Positions 1 to 7,593 of a stretch of DNA of 7,593 bases are shown piece after piece. Every line of letters starts with the position of its first letter. The first letter of the stretch is position 1. The position numbers and the translations under genes are program-made. Origin of the DNA: Anthoceros angustus. Taxonomy: Eukaryota; Plantae; Anthocerotophyta. The notes below the pieces were generated by a model. That model searched no databases and was not told where the DNA came from. It saw only the letters and a program-made list of their open reading frames with translations. The stretch covers positions 1 to 7,593 of the forward strand of contig VJWM01000434.1 of the NCBI GenBank assembly GCA_010909165.1, in the 5' to 3' direction.

Positions 1-178
1 GGCCGATCGCGATCACTATCGGCGTGATCGGGCCGGTGGAGGGAGGCGGTGAGAGCCAGCCAATCGAAGGCAGCGGGCGTGAGCAAGCAGACGAGCCGTG
101 CGAAAGGCGGAGGCCACCAAAATCGGGGACCTCGGCCTGCAGAGGTAGAAGGGCGGCGGAGGCGGAGGGACAAGGACA

Positions 179-200
179 CCTTGGAGTTACAACTCCAAGG
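179..200. repeat. Perfect inverted repeat, 10-bp arms with 2-nt loop
   Basis: ccttggagtt-ac-aactccaagg; the arms are exact reverse complements. Confidence 0.9.
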
Positions 201-362
201 CAGCGTCGGGCGGAGGGGTTCTCATGAGAGAAGTCCAAGACTTGAGCCGGAGATGAGGCGCCTCCCACGCCAAGATGGAGGCAGGGGTGAGTGAGGCAGC
301 GGACCAGCCGGGGCCTGTGAAGTTCATAAGGAGATGGATTCACTAGCAAGTAAATAAAATTA

Positions 363-368
363 TTTATT
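363..368 (-). terminator. Candidate polyadenylation signal AATAAA of ALY-like copy 1
   Basis: AATAAA on the minus strand ~85 nt after the stop codon, preceded by TGTA/T-rich sequence typical of plant 3' UTR upstream elements; conserved in copy 2. Confidence 0.45.
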
Positions 369-732
369 TAATTATGTATGTATGCTATTCTTTGAACAAC
401 AAAGAAACATACAACCATATTACATACATATCAGGCCCTTCTTGTTTCCACCTTTAAATTTGCATCTGACTAAATTGTGCTAACATGAAGTCTTGCGATA
501 TGCAATCTCGCATCACTTGACCATGGTACACATCTAGCTCCGCATCCAAGACCTCTGCACTTTTGACTATGGCGGAGGTGGGTTGGCTACCTCCTCTTCC
601 TATAACATGTGCCGCCACACTCCCATTTGGGGTCGTTGGTTTCTGCTTGTATTATCATTCGCATATCAATTGCCTCAATGGTCATTGGTTTGCCATCAAG
701 ATCAAGTGGTTGTTTGGCTTAGTGGTTCGGAG

Positions 733-977
733 CTTTGCGATAGAGAACCACAATAGCAGATAGGGTTGCAACAAAGTCGGGGCTCAAGTATCACAAAGTT
801 AGAGACTTCAACTTAAAGCGTGAGACAAGATCAAACAACAAAATCCAAATGTAAAATTGAAGTTCAAAACCGCCCAATCATATATCGACAAGCTAGGGCA
901 CAAGTAACACTAAATATGCACAAGTTCCACTAAGTACTTAAGCATCTAACGGCACACCAAAGTGTGTAGTTACAAAC
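733..977 (-). other. Probable intron of ALY-like copy 1
   Basis: AAG|GTTTGT donor right after the ...LTSK codons; T-rich, stops in all three frames; acceptor AG near 733-734 uncertain. Confidence 0.55.
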
Positions 978-1109
978 CTTGGAGGTTAAGTAGGGTGATT
1001 CGTCTTGCTACACGGTTATCGTAAGTCGTGTCAACACCTCGAGCCCTCGAGAACCTCTCGTCCTTGGCAACGATTCGTCCGCATTGGATGGCGAGCACAC
1101 GCCTTGCTT

Positions 1110-1375
1110 TCTTTTATTGAGCTTGATCAAGTCATCAAGACTCAATTTGCCTTCCTTAAGCAGCGGTTCCATACATATGGTGACCGCCACCGTGTCCTTT
1201 GCCTTAAGCTTGATCAAGTCATGCTTATTCTTTTTATTGAGCTTGATCAAGTCATCAAGACTCAATTTGCCTTCCTTAGCAGCGGTTTCATGCATGTGGT
1301 GACCGCGTGCCTTGCCTTAAGCTTGATCAAGTCATCCACATTCTTTTTATTGAGCTTGATCAAGTCATCAAGACT
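1110..1375 (-). repeat. Coding tandem repeat, ~113-120 bp period, encoding SLDDLIKLNKK units
   Basis: Three copies of ttttattgagcttgatcaagtcatcaagact plus two shorter cttaagcttgatcaagtcat copies (1203-1223, 1316-1336). Confidence 0.95.
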
Positions 1376-1570
1376 TAGATGACCAGCGTTGTCTTAGGTC
1401 CTCGAGCAACTCATAATTATTGCTTGGTGGCGAATTCATTATTGCTTGGATGTTTGTGCTCTATAATGTATTTAAAATTGGTCAATATGGATTATTTTGT
1501 GAAAATATATTCAACCGTGGTGGTTGCTCTCAATATCCTAGGCAAATCAATTGTTAATTGCAAGGATGAG

Positions 1571-1913
1571 CAATTTTACCGACCACTTATTGTTTGATAG
1601 ATGTTCAATTTTACCGACCACTTATTGTTTGATAGATGTTCAATTTTATAGACCACTTATTGTTTGATAGATGTTCAATTTTATGGACCACTTATTGTTT
1701 GATAGATGTTCAATTTTATAGACCACTTATTGTTTGATAGATGTTCAATTTCTTGACCACTTATTGTTTGATAGATGTTCAATTTCGAGCACTTATTGTT
1801 TGATAGATGTTCAATTTATAGACCACTTATTGTTTGATAGATGTTCAATTTTATACCACTTATTGTTTGATAGATGTTCAATTTTATACACCACTTATTG
1901 TTTGATAGATGTT
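1571..1913. repeat. 35-bp minisatellite, 10 units
   Basis: Consensus caattttatagaccacttattgtttgatagatgtt; units start at 1571, 1606, 1641, 1676, 1711, 1746, 1780, 1812, 1846 and 1879; variation is confined to a short stretch after caattt. Confidence 0.97.
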
Positions 1914-2054
1914 CACGAGGTGGAGCGTGGCGAGGATGAGCAACTTAACAAACCACTTCTTGTTAGGCTTTCCTAAGGTGCAGCGTTGCGAAGGTGGGCA
2001 ACTCAACCAACCACTTAGATGATGGCTCCTTTATAGATGACCTTGAATACTAGA

Positions 2055-2290
2055 TACTATCTGAGGATATTTGATATTTCCTTTCTAGCATCTTCAAATT
2101 GTTTTCTTGTGATAGGTACTATAAATGGATATTTGATATTTCCTTTATGCACGTTCAAGTTGTTTTTTCTTAATACATACTATTAATGGATATATGATAT
2201 TTCCTTTCCGGCATGTTCTAATTGTTTTCTTGTGGTAGCGATATTATATTTATATTTGGTATTTTCTTTTGTGGTATCTTTGAATTTCTT
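2055..2290. repeat. Degenerate ~62-bp tandem repeat, 3 clear units and one decayed unit
   Basis: tactat...ggatat(t/a)tgatatttccttt...ttgttt recurs at 2055, 2117 and 2178; weaker at ~2240. Confidence 0.85.
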
Positions 2291-3116
2291 TCATGCTTTC
2301 GTATTGGTCCATCTTAGTAACAAAATGGCATGGTTGTGCAACTTAATAATTAAGTCTCCTCACTTGCCTTCTTAATGTACAACATGTCAATTGGAGAACT
2401 AAACTACACCAAATCTTTGGAATAGAAGTTGATGTGGGAAATAGTTACCACCATTGATTAGACAAAGGCATTTGTTTGGTTCCTTGATGAACTTTGTGGC
2501 GTGAACTAAGCAATGTCATGCCTAACACTTCAGCCCAAATGTGGTAACATGGTCATAGTTTTAACCTTATTAATGTTATGAATTGCGTGCTAAACTTACG
2601 TCAACTTAAGGCTGGCCTTGATTGCCACGAACCTCTTATGTTGAAGCTCACGATGGCCTCCCAAAGCGCTTCTTACTAAGGGCTGTCCATGGCATTCAAA
2701 CCTTCATCAAAAGGAGCCATTCGTATATCTAGTTTGCGGCACGAAATCTTTATCAAGGTGCCCAATATTGCAAGGTGCAAGCGGCAATTAGGAGACCCCA
2801 ATACTTTAGTGTAGATGAGACCATCCAATTTGTACACCTTTGACATAAAGAACTACTCATCATATTATGATTTCAAGGACTATCAAACTCGTAGAGGCGG
2901 AAAACAAACCTAGACTTGTAGGATAAGAGGTTAGTCGTAGAGACTTTGCGTTGTGGAATAGCGAGGTTTGACCTACTTTGGGCTTTTCTTGTGAATACAT
3001 AAGCATTGGGATTCTCATCTTATCTCCATTTTCAAATTTCATGGCCAAGCGGAAAAAACATTACTACAATAATATAAATTAAACCACTAGCACAACAAAA
3101 ATTAAGGCATAATAAA

Positions 3117-3180
3117 GCAAAAAAAGAATAAAACATAAAACATAAAACAAAACAAAACCTCAAACAACGGCAAAACAATA
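3117..3180. repeat. A-rich low-complexity tract (aaaac/aaaacat units)
   Basis: aaaacataaaacataaaacaaaacaaaac seen directly. Confidence 0.7.
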
Positions 3181-4163
3181 GAGAGAACCTTGTGCATCTT
3201 TTGAATCTTTAGACATTTGGCTTGGGCGGCTCCAAGTGCACACCATACCACTTCGTTCTCGCATTGCGCGAATCAAGAAACATCGGTCAAGGAATTATTA
3301 TTGTGCCAAATGTGAAACAAAGTCTTGTGATTCCCAGCGAGTATAGTCTTAGGATTGGTAGTGCAGTGAAAGGTTGATCATAAACAAGTTTGCACCAAAA
3401 TCACGAGCCTAAACACTCTAAATGTTTGTACGTGCGGATTGTGAATGACCTTCTTTTAGGAAGGCTCAAAATTGGATAAAATTGAAAATCAAATGCGTTT
3501 GTGCACACGTAAACAAGACCTAAACTATTCAAAATGGTCTTTTTAGTGCGGATTTTTAGCATGCAATTTGGGGTTTGCAAGTCGTGTGCAAAAGGGTTGG
3601 AGAAACCCCTTTCTACCCAGATATTCTTGGTAGAAACCCATATGATCCCCCTCTCCTTCTTGTCTGGTGGTAACACAATATCAACGAGATTACTCTTGCA
3701 TTGAACTTAATTTATGGTCTTGGTAATGACATTGTTGCACCACTTGTGGCTGCAAAGGAGTTTCTCAATAGGCTAGAGGTCGATGTGGTCATTGCTCGAG
3801 CCTTGCGAAAGGATCTTTGGTAGAGACCATATTGATTATGACTTTTCACTCCATGGATGATCGCCTCCAGTTATGAAGGCTAGGTCTATGTTACGGACGA
3901 CTTTATATATCAATCTTGATCTTACACCATTTGGAAGATTAAGGAGAAGTTACCTTTGCTTTCGTCAGAGTCACTTTCTTTCATGGGGATGAATTTGTGG
4001 TGTTTAGCCCTCGTTCATGCATTTCATTAACATTATTGATTGATTGAAGATTATTTGTCTTGTTTGAATTTTACCTTTGCATTCGTCTAGACCATTTTAC
4101 GCAATCTATGTAGTTGCCATATTTCAATCCTATCAAGATCATCCTTAGTGGACTTGAATAAAT

Positions 4164-4350
4164 TTCTTCTTCTTCCTCTTCATCTTCTTCTTCTTGTTGT
4201 TGTTCTTGTTCTTCTTCTTTCTTCATCTTCTTCTTCTTCTTCTTCTTCTTCTTCTTCTTCTTCATCTTCTTCTTCTTCTTCTTCTTCTTCTTCTTCTTCT
4301 TCTTCTTCTTCTTCTTCTTCTTCTTCTTCTTCTTCTTCTTCTTCTTCTTC
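4164..4350. repeat. (TTC)n/(GAA)n microsatellite, ~62 triplets
   Basis: Interrupted at the left end (gtt, atc, ctc variants); pure runs at 4228-4263 (12 units) and 4267-4350 (28 units). Confidence 0.98.
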
Positions 4351-4459
4351 CGTTATTAATTGTATTTAGAAAACTATGAAACTTCTTCACCTCTAGGTAT
4401 TGTATGTATACATGTTTAGTATAGTGATTATTTTTCACTAGCATAGTAAATAAAAATTA

Positions 4460-4465
4460 TTTATT
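4460..4465 (-). terminator. Candidate polyadenylation signal AATAAA of ALY-like copy 2
   Basis: Position equivalent to 363-368. Confidence 0.45.
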
Positions 4466-4832
4466 TAATTATTTATGTATGCTATTCTTTGCAACAACAA
4501 AGAAACATACAACCATATTACATACATATCGGGCCCTTCTTGTTTCCACCTTTAAATTTGCATCTGACTAAATTGTGCTAACATGAAGTCTTGCGATATG
4601 CAATCTCGCATCCTTGACCATGGTACACATCTAGCTCCGCATCCAAGACCTGCACTTTTGACTATGGCGGAGGTGGGTTGGCTACCCTCTTCCTATAACA
4701 TGTGCGCCACACTCCCATTTGGGGTCGTTGGTTTTGCTTGTATTATCATTCGCATATCAATTGCCTCAATGGTCATTGGTTTGCCATCAAGATCAAGTGG
4801 TTGTTTGGCTTAGTGGTGGTTGACGAGCTTTA

Positions 4833-5075
4833 CTGCGATAAGAGAACCACAATAACTTAGATAGGTTGCAACAAAGTCGGGGCTCAAGTATCACAAAGTT
4901 AGAGACTTCAACTTAAAGCTGTGAGACAAGATCAAACAACAAAATCAAATGTAAAATTGAAGTTCAAAACCCAATCATATATCGACAAGCTAGGGCACAA
5001 GTAACACTAAATATGCACAAGTTCCACTAAGTACTTAAGCATCTAACTGGCACACCAAAGTGTGTAGTTACAAAC
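4833..5075 (-). other. Probable intron of ALY-like copy 2
   Basis: AAG|GTTTGT donor at 5075; pyrimidine tract plus CAG (ttctcttatcgcag) ending at 4833. Confidence 0.55.
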
Positions 5076-5207
5076 CTTGGAGGTTAAGTAGGGTGCGATT
5101 CGTCTTGCTACACGGTTATCTAAGTGTGTCAACACCTCAAGCCCGCCTCGAGAACCTCGTCCTTGGCAGTTCGTCCGCATTGGATGGACACCGCCACGCC
5201 TTGCTTT

Positions 5208-5472
5208 CTTTTTATTGAGCTTGATCAAGTCATCAAGACTCAATTTGCCTTCCTTAAGCGGCAGCGGTTCCATACATATGGTGACCGCCAGTCCTTTGCC
5301 TTAAGCTTGATCAAGTCATGCTTATTCTTTTATTGAGCTTGATCAAGTCATCAAGACTCAATTTGCCTTCCTTAGCGGTTTCATGCATGTGGTGACCGCC
5401 GTGTGCTTTTGCCTTAAGCTTGATCAAGTCATCCACATTCTTTTTATTGAGCTTGATCAAGTCATCAAGACT
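5208..5472 (-). repeat. Coding tandem repeat, ~114-118 bp period, encoding SLDDLIKLNKK units
   Basis: Three full units and two half units (5300-5320, 5413-5433), as in copy 1. Confidence 0.95.
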
Positions 5473-5681
5473 TAGATGACCACGTTGTCTTAGGTCCTCG
5501 AGCAACTCATAATTATTGCTTGGTGAGAATTCATTATTGCTTGGATGTTTGTGCTCTATAATGTATTTAAAATTGGTCAATATGGATTATTTTTGTGAAA
5601 AATATATTCAACCGTGGTGGTTGCTCTCAATATCCTAGGCAAATCAATTGTTAGGAGTTCTCGTCCCATTGCAAGGATGAG

Positions 5682-5990
5682 CAATTTTACCGACCACTTA
5701 TTGTTTGATAGATGTTCAATTTTACCGACCACTTATTGTTTGATAGATGTTCAATTTTATAGACCACTTATTGTTTGATAGATGTTCAATTTTATGGACC
5801 ACTTATTGTTTGATAGATGTTCAATTTTATAGACCACTTATTGTTTGATAGATGTTCAATTTTATGACCACTTATTGTTTGATAGATGTTCAATTTTCGA
5901 GCACTTATTGTTTGATAGATGTTCAATTTTATACCACTTATTGTTTGATAGATGTTCAATTTATAGACCACTTATTGTTTGATAGATGTT
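5682..5990. repeat. 35-bp minisatellite, 9 units
   Basis: Units start at 5682, 5717, 5752, 5787, 5822, 5857, 5891, 5924 and 5957; variant order largely matches the first seven units of copy 1. Confidence 0.97.
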
Positions 5991-6340
5991 TGTGGGAGGA
6001 AAACCGGGGCTTAGATTCACCCTCTAGTGGCCACACTTATCCCACTGCTAAGTACAATAGGTTTCGTCCCATGAGACTCTTGTTTGTCGTCACCAACATC
6101 CAAGGCACAAACCACACGCCTCTTCACACCCCAAGCTCCCTCACACAGGAGCAACTTCAACTCACTCCATGCAGCAGCCCACGCCTCACCATGCCGCTCC
6201 GTCAATCACCGCTTCTAGACCTACAACGACCCTCACGACTATAGGTCCACACCCCACGGCAAGAGGTCGCCACGCACGACGCTGCAACGCGACTCACCAC
6301 CCGTGATCGTCCACTATTCCTTTCCCATCGCCTTCCCACA
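5991..6340 (+). mobile_element. Probable 5' LTR (~350 bp) of an LTR retrotransposon
   Basis: Starts TGTGGGA exactly where homology to copy 1 ends; ends TCCCACA (7-bp terminal inverted repeat, TG...CA); followed 2 nt later by TGG; sharp shift to C-rich composition. Second LTR and TSD are not in the window. Confidence 0.55.
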
Positions 6341-7593
6341 ATTGGCACACCTCAACCACCAACTCGGGCGCCACTCCCGACCGCCTCCGCTGAATCACCC
6401 TCCTGGACCTACAACGACATCCTACGAGGGTCCCACCCTATGGCGGTAGGTCCACCGCTCACGCATAGGGACCCCCTACACAGCGACTTCTCCACCCGTG
6501 ATTTTGAGACCTTAGCCCGGCTTCCCCTCGGTTTGGTGTGATTTGGGACCCTCCCTTAGGCTCGACTTGGGCCTTCTTCTTACTCCTAATCTCTACCTAC
6601 CCTCTACTCAACATTCAGCTCCACATTCTCCTCAACACTCACCTCAACTCAACTCCTCATCCTCCTAATCTAACCTTACTTCAAGCTCACTGCCCTAGCT
6701 CGCCCTTAGACAACTGGGTCCGCTAAGCCAACAAGTTCTTCCTTGGGCGTTGCTATGAGTTTGCACTGGACAATGAGAACCTCCGGAGTCTTTCCGTAGT
6801 CTACCCTCAAGCCGAGAGTTCCTTGGGCATCGCCACACACCCAAAGCAAAGCAATTTCAAAGAACCATTCACAAGGGAGCAACTGCAGGGCGCCGCAAGG
6901 AGCGAGCCTCCGCCAAGCACTCCGACCACGCAAACTCCCTCTACCATCGCGTTAGCTTGCAGCAGACGAAATTCCTTCACAAGGAGCAAAGGACTCATGA
7001 GTTTGGGAGCGCAAGACGATAATTTTACTTCACAAGCTCCCTCCTTTTAGGGAGGTCCTCACACAGCCTCTCGGCGCCCTCTTGGCCCCGCCTCACTCTT
7101 ATTTTAGTGTATCCTATTGCGACTTTAAGTTCGACATCCAAGCATCTTGGGTAAAATTCTATTCTAGCAAACTTCACCTATGTGAGCCTTAATGGCTCGT
7201 CAACATTCCTATCTAGCTAGTCAACACACCCTCGGGTTGACAAGCATTAATGCCTGTCCTCCTCTAAAGAAAAGTCTCCCCAAGCAATGAGCCCACACTC
7301 CAAGCTACCACCACCCTTCAATTACCTCTAGATGTGCCGCATCGCCTGGTGATCCTACGGATGTAGGGCCACCCTCTACACCTCCTACGGACGGGGTCAC
7401 TCTTGGCCCTACCGCCTCCACACTCTCCAGCAAGAAGGTCTCCCGTGAGCGGATCTTGCTCCATGCCTTCCTCTTCCTCCTCCGAGTCATCCTCACGGCC
7501 TTCCATACCGCATGTGTTTGTCCGCCATGAATGCCACCAAGTGCCTAGCCTCCACTGCGCTCAAGCATCCTCTTCCCTGCCCCTAGCAACCAA
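6341..7593 (+). mobile_element. Probable retroelement 5' leader/internal sequence; no gag or pol motif recognised
   Basis: Lies after the LTR/PBS-like signals; C-rich, with internal degenerate repeats; only short, unrecognisable ORFs. Confidence 0.35.
6343..6351 (+). promoter_or_regulatory. PBS-like site TGGCACACC
   Basis: TGG (complement of tRNA CCA) 2 nt after the putative LTR end; resembles a recalled tRNA-Arg-type PBS (TGGCACGCC) but diverges after 9 nt. Confidence 0.4.

Follow-up and report, generated by a model that had tools for sequence, protein, structure and literature searches.

Proteins that bind the mRNA-export helicase UAP56 (DDX39B) are built on several plans. In ALYREF, of the ALY/REF family, an N-terminal UAP56-binding motif (UBM) is followed by an arginine/glycine-rich (RG) region, an RNA recognition motif (RRM), a second RG region and a C-terminal UBM (PMC7744094). 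Adaptors that do not follow this layout include UIF, LUZP4 and POLDIP3, each with one UBM, and CHTOP, with two that lie close together (PMC7744094, PMC2828547). SARNP/Tho1 orthologues have 2-6 DDX39B-interacting motifs in tandem, and the human protein can bind five helicases (PMC10508174). The subject of this study is a stretch of 7,593 nucleotides (nt) from Anthoceros angustus (contig VJWM01000434.1, positions 1 to 7,593), referred to below as the window. Its minus strand carries, at 454-1439, a sequence with the motifs of an ALY/REF gene in which the N-terminal UBM is multiplied. A preliminary description, made from the sequence alone, had read this segment as a gene for an RRM-less protein of about 245 amino acids (aa) that might act as a scaffold, decoy or dominant-negative modulator of mRNA export. 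We arrive at a different explanation, which we hold to be probable: the segment is a decaying, non-functional relic of an ALY/REF-type (THOC4-like) gene inside a high-copy repeat of about 4.1 kb. A working multi-motif UAP56 binder is unsupported.

Results

ALY/REF-type motifs in collinear order

The ALY-like part at 454-1439 lies in the first of two repeat copies, A and B, and its motif positions were checked by translation of the minus strand (Table 1). The N- and C-type UBM-like motifs of the preliminary description are present where it had placed them. Both copies contain, in ALY order, three SLDDLIKLNK(K/R) motifs, two half motifs of the form (D/H)DLIKLKA, the peptide LDLDGKPMTIEAI and a C-terminal (SAE)VLDAELDVYH. 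The motifs are real and occur far above chance: the core of the N motif is found six times in the window and the C motif twice, compared with 0.0 per window in 1000 shuffles, and LDG[KR]PM is found twice, compared with 0.001 per shuffle. RG stretches are short and degenerate in both copies. In copy B the RG-rich region and the end of exon 1 read KKKARRGGVHPMRTNCQGRGSRGG...RVARRIAPYLTSK (5076-5252); in copy A, (E)SPYLTSK is followed directly by the GT at 976-977, and VIGRGGSQ stands ahead of the C motif. LDLDGKPMTIEAI resembles the last strand of the ALY RRM, of which it is presumably the counterpart, a likeness that no profile match supports.

Profile searches pointed in the same direction, with every match under its curated cut-off. 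The C-terminal piece matched Pfam FoP_duplication (PF13865) at E=0.0026 and 18.8 bits (cut-off 24.6), and FoP_duplication was also its nearest named cluster in the language-model Atlas (rank 2 overall, score 0.87, 171 shared features); a PDB search with this piece gave no match. In the FYTT/UIF profile, two N-terminal pieces matched only the UBM segment, profile positions 19-38 of 310, over about 17-20 residues (E 0.025 and 0.034; 13.9-14.4 bits, cut-off 21 bits). Marginal PDB matches aligned an N piece with the N terminus of the mouse REF2 (E 1.3) and human THOC4 (E 9.3) chains around 'sldd+ikln'. Atlas neighbours comprised plant UIF-like ('UAP56-interacting factor'), FoP and ALY clusters. 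Motif and profile evidence thus bears out a multiplied N-terminal UBM and a retained C-terminal FoP/UBM-like motif.

Because this motif, profile and Atlas evidence is joined by a collinear order of parts (N-terminal UBM, RG stretch, end of the RRM, RG stretch, C-terminal UBM) that equals the published ALYREF architecture, we accept that the segment probably descends from an ALY/REF-type parent, on motif-level and sub-threshold profile evidence. The derivation that had been suggested stands insofar as three collinear pieces point to ALY; checked against the RRM and FoP profiles, it gained a FoP match below the cut-off and no RRM.

That the RRM is not intact was correctly recognized. RRM_1 gave no match at E values up to 10 on the stop-free pieces, the intron-like pieces or an X-joined 50-aa read-through of 590-790, and PDB searches returned no RRM. 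The intron-like spacer and the sequence upstream of LDLDGKPM were also searched for remnants of the RRM, of which none was detected, and a resemblance to the RNP1/helix-2 part of ALY was not borne out. The RRM is missing since most of its coding DNA is absent, and not by faster decay.

Neither copy encodes the 245-aa protein

The 245-aa 'merged translation' proved to be a mosaic, drawn from copy A (454-1439) and copy B (4552-5534) and from all three frames. As assembled, translation in the ATG frame stops after 23 codons in A and 14 in B, and 6 and 9 stops, respectively, precede the donor site. Following the ALY-like peptides by eye takes a minimum of 5 changes of frame in A and of 7 in B. In A, the longest open reading frame (ORF) that begins with an ATG has 95 aa and covers two full motifs plus a half motif; the longest in B has 76 aa and covers one motif. 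The protein is encoded by neither copy, and both copies are probably dead as protein genes.

The arrangement of the motifs records how they multiplied. Successive full motifs are 113 and 120 nt apart in A and 114 and 118 nt apart in B, and each unit contains a half motif 33 nt further on than its full motif. In all six full motifs the first 29 of 33 nt are identical, third codon positions included, and the length of the terminal A-run alone varies. Such identity at every codon position marks recent DNA duplication, not helicase binding kept by purifying selection. The two linkers between motifs, homologous at the DNA level, are translated from different frames (GHHMHET... and VTICMEPLL...), and their protein sequence is therefore not conserved. 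On the plus strand, opposite the motif repeat, 999-1379 is free of stops for 127 codons (FIELDQVIKTQFAFL... repeated) and has no family match; this open stretch is a by-product of the motif repeat.

Divergence between A and B takes no account of the reading frame. Gap events per 100 aligned nt number 2.9 in exon 1, 2.7 in the intron-like spacer, 1.9 in exon 2 and 2.7 in the 3′-untranslated-region (3′-UTR)-like tail, and 15 of the 18 exonic indels break the frame, the other 3 being multiples of three. Because indel density is alike in exon-like and intron-like parts and the indels are mostly not multiples of three, we conclude that the exon-like parts are without coding constraint and that the copies decay by frame-blind small indels. 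The preliminary description had seen a hint of selection on helicase binding in the survival of both UBM types; with motif copies identical at every codon position, frame-blind exonic indels and an RRM whose DNA is absent, that hint disappears.

The segment is part of a high-copy 4.1-kb repeat

What had been missed earlier is that the segment is one of two copies 4.1 kb apart and part of a high-copy repeat. Copies A and B form a direct repeat with a spacing of about 4097 nt and a column identity of 94%, and the window contains 1.4 units, head to tail, with 9 nt between them. Copy B ends at 5990 inside its 35-bp array, where it is interrupted by unrelated C-rich DNA; the region of copy A equivalent to that beyond the break point consists of degenerate array units. 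This layout fits a head-to-tail array broken up by other elements.

To the sequence itself we added a comparison of 320-6040 with public runs: DNA run X1, RNA run X3 of the same sample, and run X2 (organism B). In X1, summed word depth was about 500-10,000 across the whole ~4.1-kb unit, not across the ALY part alone, and the non-coding remainder at 1916-4435 was as deep as the ALY part; these depths do not translate into a copy number. A total of 1720 contigs matched, with 124 indel variants and 9 substitution variants. Length variants of high depth included +G behind 1193 (789/3507) and +GAG behind 1431 (881/2957). We conclude that the 4.1-kb unit in its entirety is repeated in high copy number, with small indels setting its members apart.

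No contig of the RNA run X3, one small run, matched 320-6040. The proposal of a scaffold, decoy or dominant-negative modulator of mRNA export is not sustained by these data: neither copy encodes such a protein, the segment belongs to a high-copy repeat, and the RNA run is without a match. A different kind of function would be that of an RNA. Gene fragments captured by transposons can yield small interfering RNAs, and with its high copy number and host-gene-derived sequence this repeat could in principle act in the same manner, as a source of small RNAs for its own silencing, with possible cross-regulation of the parent ALY gene. Since X3 has no matching contig and the parent gene was not found, we consider this highly improbable.

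In run X2 (organism B), a 257-nt contig of depth 3.1 covers 514-755, with 4 other letters and 14 gap letters. This contig, which overlies the C-terminal exon-like part, may represent the parent ALY gene or a low-copy ancestor in a relative.

Evidence for an open ancestor and for assembly error

Three groups of observations weigh against a dead relic. The first concerns the ancestor of the two copies. When mosaics were built by taking either A or B at each difference, 112 of 16,384 had an open frame between the ATG and the donor site that included all three motifs, and 4 of 32 exon 2 mosaics were open up to the stop; in control regions (the intron-like spacer, the upstream region and both antisense strands) the number of open mosaics was 0. 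Because mosaics open in both exon-like parts and never in the controls, the common ancestor of A and B was probably still open, triplication included, and an intact relative could exist elsewhere in the genome. Furthermore, the whole depth of run X1 behind 702 shows one additional C, which would bring the AG acceptor at 718-719 into phase with the AAG/GT donor.

These results could be accommodated by an intact, RRM-less master copy located elsewhere, with three N-terminal UBMs and one C-terminal UBM, whose product would act as a scaffold, decoy or dominant negative by binding several UAP56 molecules; A and B would be dead members of the same family. Apart from the reopened frames and the phased acceptor, one in-frame spacing in each copy (114 nt in B, 120 nt in A) speaks for it. 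However, no intact copy was seen, a similar protein is absent from the databases searched, no RNA matched, and the linkers are read in different frames. An open ancestor is also expected if amplification quickly followed loss of function, and in-frame duplications together with a phase-compatible deletion would, by our estimate, arise by chance with a probability of roughly 1/9 to 1/27. We judge a master copy to be quite unlikely. There is a very slim chance that the family includes an open, spliced and expressed member whose product has no RRM but three UAP56-binding motifs at the N-terminal end and one at the C-terminal end. Such an ALY derivative would be a motif-amplified helicase 'sponge' and would modulate mRNA export through TREX; if so, amplification might reflect dosage selection or a selfish role.

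The searches for relatives were as follows. Searches of about 15 billion sequences with the 102-aa and 65-aa pieces, limited to targets of 0.55-1.75 times the query length, a range outside which full-length ALYs fall, gave no homologous protein. An 85-aa piece searched against 1.84 billion representatives retrieved only P0001, a spurious translated tandem repeat. None of four ORFs had an exact counterpart in the collection, and metagenome scans with a DNA pattern and with a peptide were both empty.

The second group of observations concerns the assembly. Differences between A and B are mostly indels of 1-4 nt, with 32 gap events against about 12 isolated substitutions, and indel density in the GC-richer ALY part is about three times that in the AT-rich 35-bp array. 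Such indel-heavy divergence is unusual for nature and could in part be due to consensus errors of long-read assembly. Only 44% of the sampled words of 454-1439 are present in run X1, and copy-private frameshifts rest on the assembly. If the frameshifts were assembly artefacts throughout, the true copies would be open and the locus would be an amplified intact gene. The roughly 3:1 ratio of indels to isolated substitutions and their uneven density are typical of long-read consensus error, and both the preponderance of indel variants among the X1 contigs and the share of words confirmed there can be read in the same sense. Against this, several A/B differences span 3-4, 14 or 33 nt at places that are not homopolymers, and in X1 the length variants found at the same sites have word depths in the hundreds to thousands; the copies truly vary in length. 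A and B also have in common the 1-nt difference from X1 at 702. We therefore regard an amplified intact gene disguised by assembly error as improbable. The indel excess reflects either an odd mutational process of the repeat family or residual long-read consensus error.

The third point is transcription: the apparent silence of the repeat is judged from one small RNA run. With these points taken into account, we retain a decaying gene relic as the best explanation.

Candidate vehicles and other features of the window

A further question is whether the ~4.1-kb unit is a tandem macrosatellite or a non-autonomous DNA transposon, CACTA-like or Pack-type, that carries the ALY fragment as cargo. CACTAG is found at the start of both copies (341 and 4436) and TAGTG at 4422-4426, and ATT stands on both sides of 341-4426 (338-340 and 4427-4429). 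Terminal inverted repeats, on the other hand, do not extend past five bases (local alignment score 19, compared with a mean of 16.5 and a maximum of 29 in shuffles), CACTA occurs nine times in the window, inverted repeats of at least 25 nt are absent, and the units lie head to tail, 9 nt apart. Foreign DNA breaks copy B inside its array, and the edge at 341 may be another interruption. A transposon of this kind seems unlikely to us.

Three other vehicles were considered and lack support. A long terminal repeat retrotransposon was suggested by the succession of segment, internal part and segment, but inspection revealed no TG..CA ends, primer-binding site or polypurine tract beside the segments; A runs on, and B is interrupted by foreign DNA. 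A Helitron on the minus strand (...CTAG/T, A/TC...) rests on four bases, and there is no GC-rich 3′ hairpin. For a Pack-MULE, inverted repeats of at least 25 nt are absent from the window. Neither a transposase nor transposon ends with target duplications were demonstrated in the window.

Table 1. Coordinates of the repeat units, the ALY-like parts and the flanking DNA in the window
Feature	Position	Strand	Remarks
Foreign G-rich DNA	1-340		
Unit 1 of the ~4.1-kb repeat	341-4435		
Copy A: 35-bp array, ALY-like fragment and 3′-UTR-like tail	341-1915	minus	Direct repeat
AT-rich 3′-UTR-like tail	341-453	minus	Reaches the edge of the repeated segment
Stop codon TAA	454-456	minus	Closes the C-terminal piece
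C-terminal UBM/FoP-like motif SAEVLDAELDVYH	523-561	minus	FoP_duplication profile; Atlas cluster
LDLDGKPMTIEAI	668-706	minus	Short GRGG stretch after it
Intron-like spacer	718-977	minus	260 nt; GT 976-977 / AG 718-719
RG-rich remnant and ...PYLTSK end of exon 1	978-1109	minus	Clearest in copy B
N-terminal UBM-like motif 3, SLDDLIKLNKR	1110-1142	minus	A-run one A short, giving a frame shift
Tandem duplication	1112-1375	minus	Period about 113 nt, 2.3 copies (Tandem Repeats Finder); nested 33-nt duplication per unit
Half motif 2, HDLIKLKA	1200-1223	minus	
N-terminal UBM-like motif 2, SLDDLIKLNKK	1230-1262	minus	33 nt same as motif 1
Half motif 1, DDLIKLKA	1313-1336	minus	
N-terminal UBM-like motif 1, SLDDLIKLNKK	1343-1375	minus	REF2 N-terminus alignment; FYTT profile positions 19-38
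ATG of the ALY-like reading (MNSPPSNNYELLEDLRQR)	1437-1439	minus	In A, out of frame with motif 1
35-bp tandem array, consensus CAATTTTATAGACCACTTATTGTTTGATAGATGTT	1571-1915	none	About 9-10 units; directly upstream of the copy A ALY-like start
Remaining non-coding part of the ~4.1-kb unit	1916-4435	none	
Start of unit 2	4436-5990		
Copy B, same segment as copy A	4436-5990	minus	Direct repeat; ALY-like part 4552-5534
Twin 35-bp array of copy B	5682-5990		
Foreign C-rich DNA	5991-7593		

Additional repeats were noted within and around the unit. In both copies a 35-bp array directly precedes the ALY-like start; the order of variant units in the arrays is not the same in A and B, and B is without one unit (33 nt). 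The non-coding part contains a 61/62-bp tandem repeat at 2051-2269 (about 3.5 copies, 75-80% identity), and near one end of the unit lies a (TTC)62 microsatellite with few interruptions (4164-4350), at which contigs of run X1 break. The left flank (1-340) is G-rich, with 65% GC, and the right flank (5991-7593) is strongly C-rich, with 50-60% GC, a GC skew of about -0.4 and, at 6197-6230 and 6385-6418, an internal repeat of 35 nt; Pfam gave no match in either flank. The flanks are unrelated to the ~4.1-kb unit and to one another, and both are probably other repeats that interrupt the array. An ORF survey, with Pfam searches on ten further open stretches, revealed no other coding signal in the window, and Rfam found no RNA family in it.

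Discussion

A plausible history of the locus starts from a fragment of an ALY/REF-type gene. The relic would retain exon 1, with the N-terminal UAP56-binding motif and the RG-rich region, one intron-like spacer, and the last exon, with the end of the RRM, an RG remnant, the C-terminal motif and the stop, followed by the 3′-UTR-like tail. A 33-nt duplication at the DNA level, by slippage or unequal exchange, may have come first; a two-fold duplication of the resulting 113-120-nt unit, by either of the same processes, may have followed; and the whole unit would then have been amplified, in tandem at least in this window. The order of the duplications and the mode of amplification, as a macrosatellite or as transposon cargo, are those that we infer from the arrangement of the copies.

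The locus is an example of a fragment of an mRNA-export adaptor gene that became part of a kb-scale, high-copy repeat and was altered in form by micro-duplications. As such it is useful for the annotation of a repeat-rich genome, and it serves as a warning against consensus 'proteins' read from several decayed copies. For the mRNA-export field it would matter only if an open, expressed member were found. Such a member would be a natural adaptor that has multiplied UBMs and no RRM, and it would lend itself directly to studying the effect of UAP56 valency on TREX.

Of the known systems, ALY/REF adaptors (ALYREF/THOC4, Yra1) share with the locus an N-terminal UBM (SLDDxIKxN), followed in the same order by putative counterparts of an RG region, the end of the RRM, an RG remnant and a C-terminal UBM/FoP-like motif (xLDAELDxYH). 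They differ from it in two defining features, an RRM and a continuous ORF, which the locus does not have, and the locus departs from them further in its three copies of the N motif with two half copies and in its position inside a high-copy repeat. Adaptors with a single UBM, such as UIF/FYTTD1 and the plant UIEF type, resemble it in having a UBM without an RRM, in the match to the UBM segment of FYTT and in the Atlas 'UAP56-interacting factor' clusters. The resemblance to UIF/FYTTD1 ends there: no profile match reaches beyond the UBM (positions 19-38 of 310), the locus has no intact gene, and its C-terminal FoP-like motif and LDGKPM piece point to ALY.

The preliminary description had called the architecture unfamiliar. 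We likewise found no similar protein, but multivalent UAP56/DDX39B binders are known that use a different motif (PMC10508174). SARNP/Tho1/MOS11 proteins carry tandem helicase-binding motifs in one chain, which is how the hypothetical 245-aa protein would work, and they show that such arrangements are real and of consequence. Their motif, in contrast, is KxxxRxx[R/K]FG (PMC10508174), with 0 matches in a six-frame translation of the window, and SARNP proteins are encoded by intact, conserved, single-copy genes. The remaining comparison is with fragments of host genes in plant repeats, whether as cargo of Pack-MULE, CACTA or Helitron elements or in kb-scale satellites. Unlike transposon cargo, the locus is not accompanied by demonstrated transposon ends, target duplications or a transposase; like these fragments, it combines an intron-containing piece of a host gene with many copies, unconstrained decay and micro-duplications.

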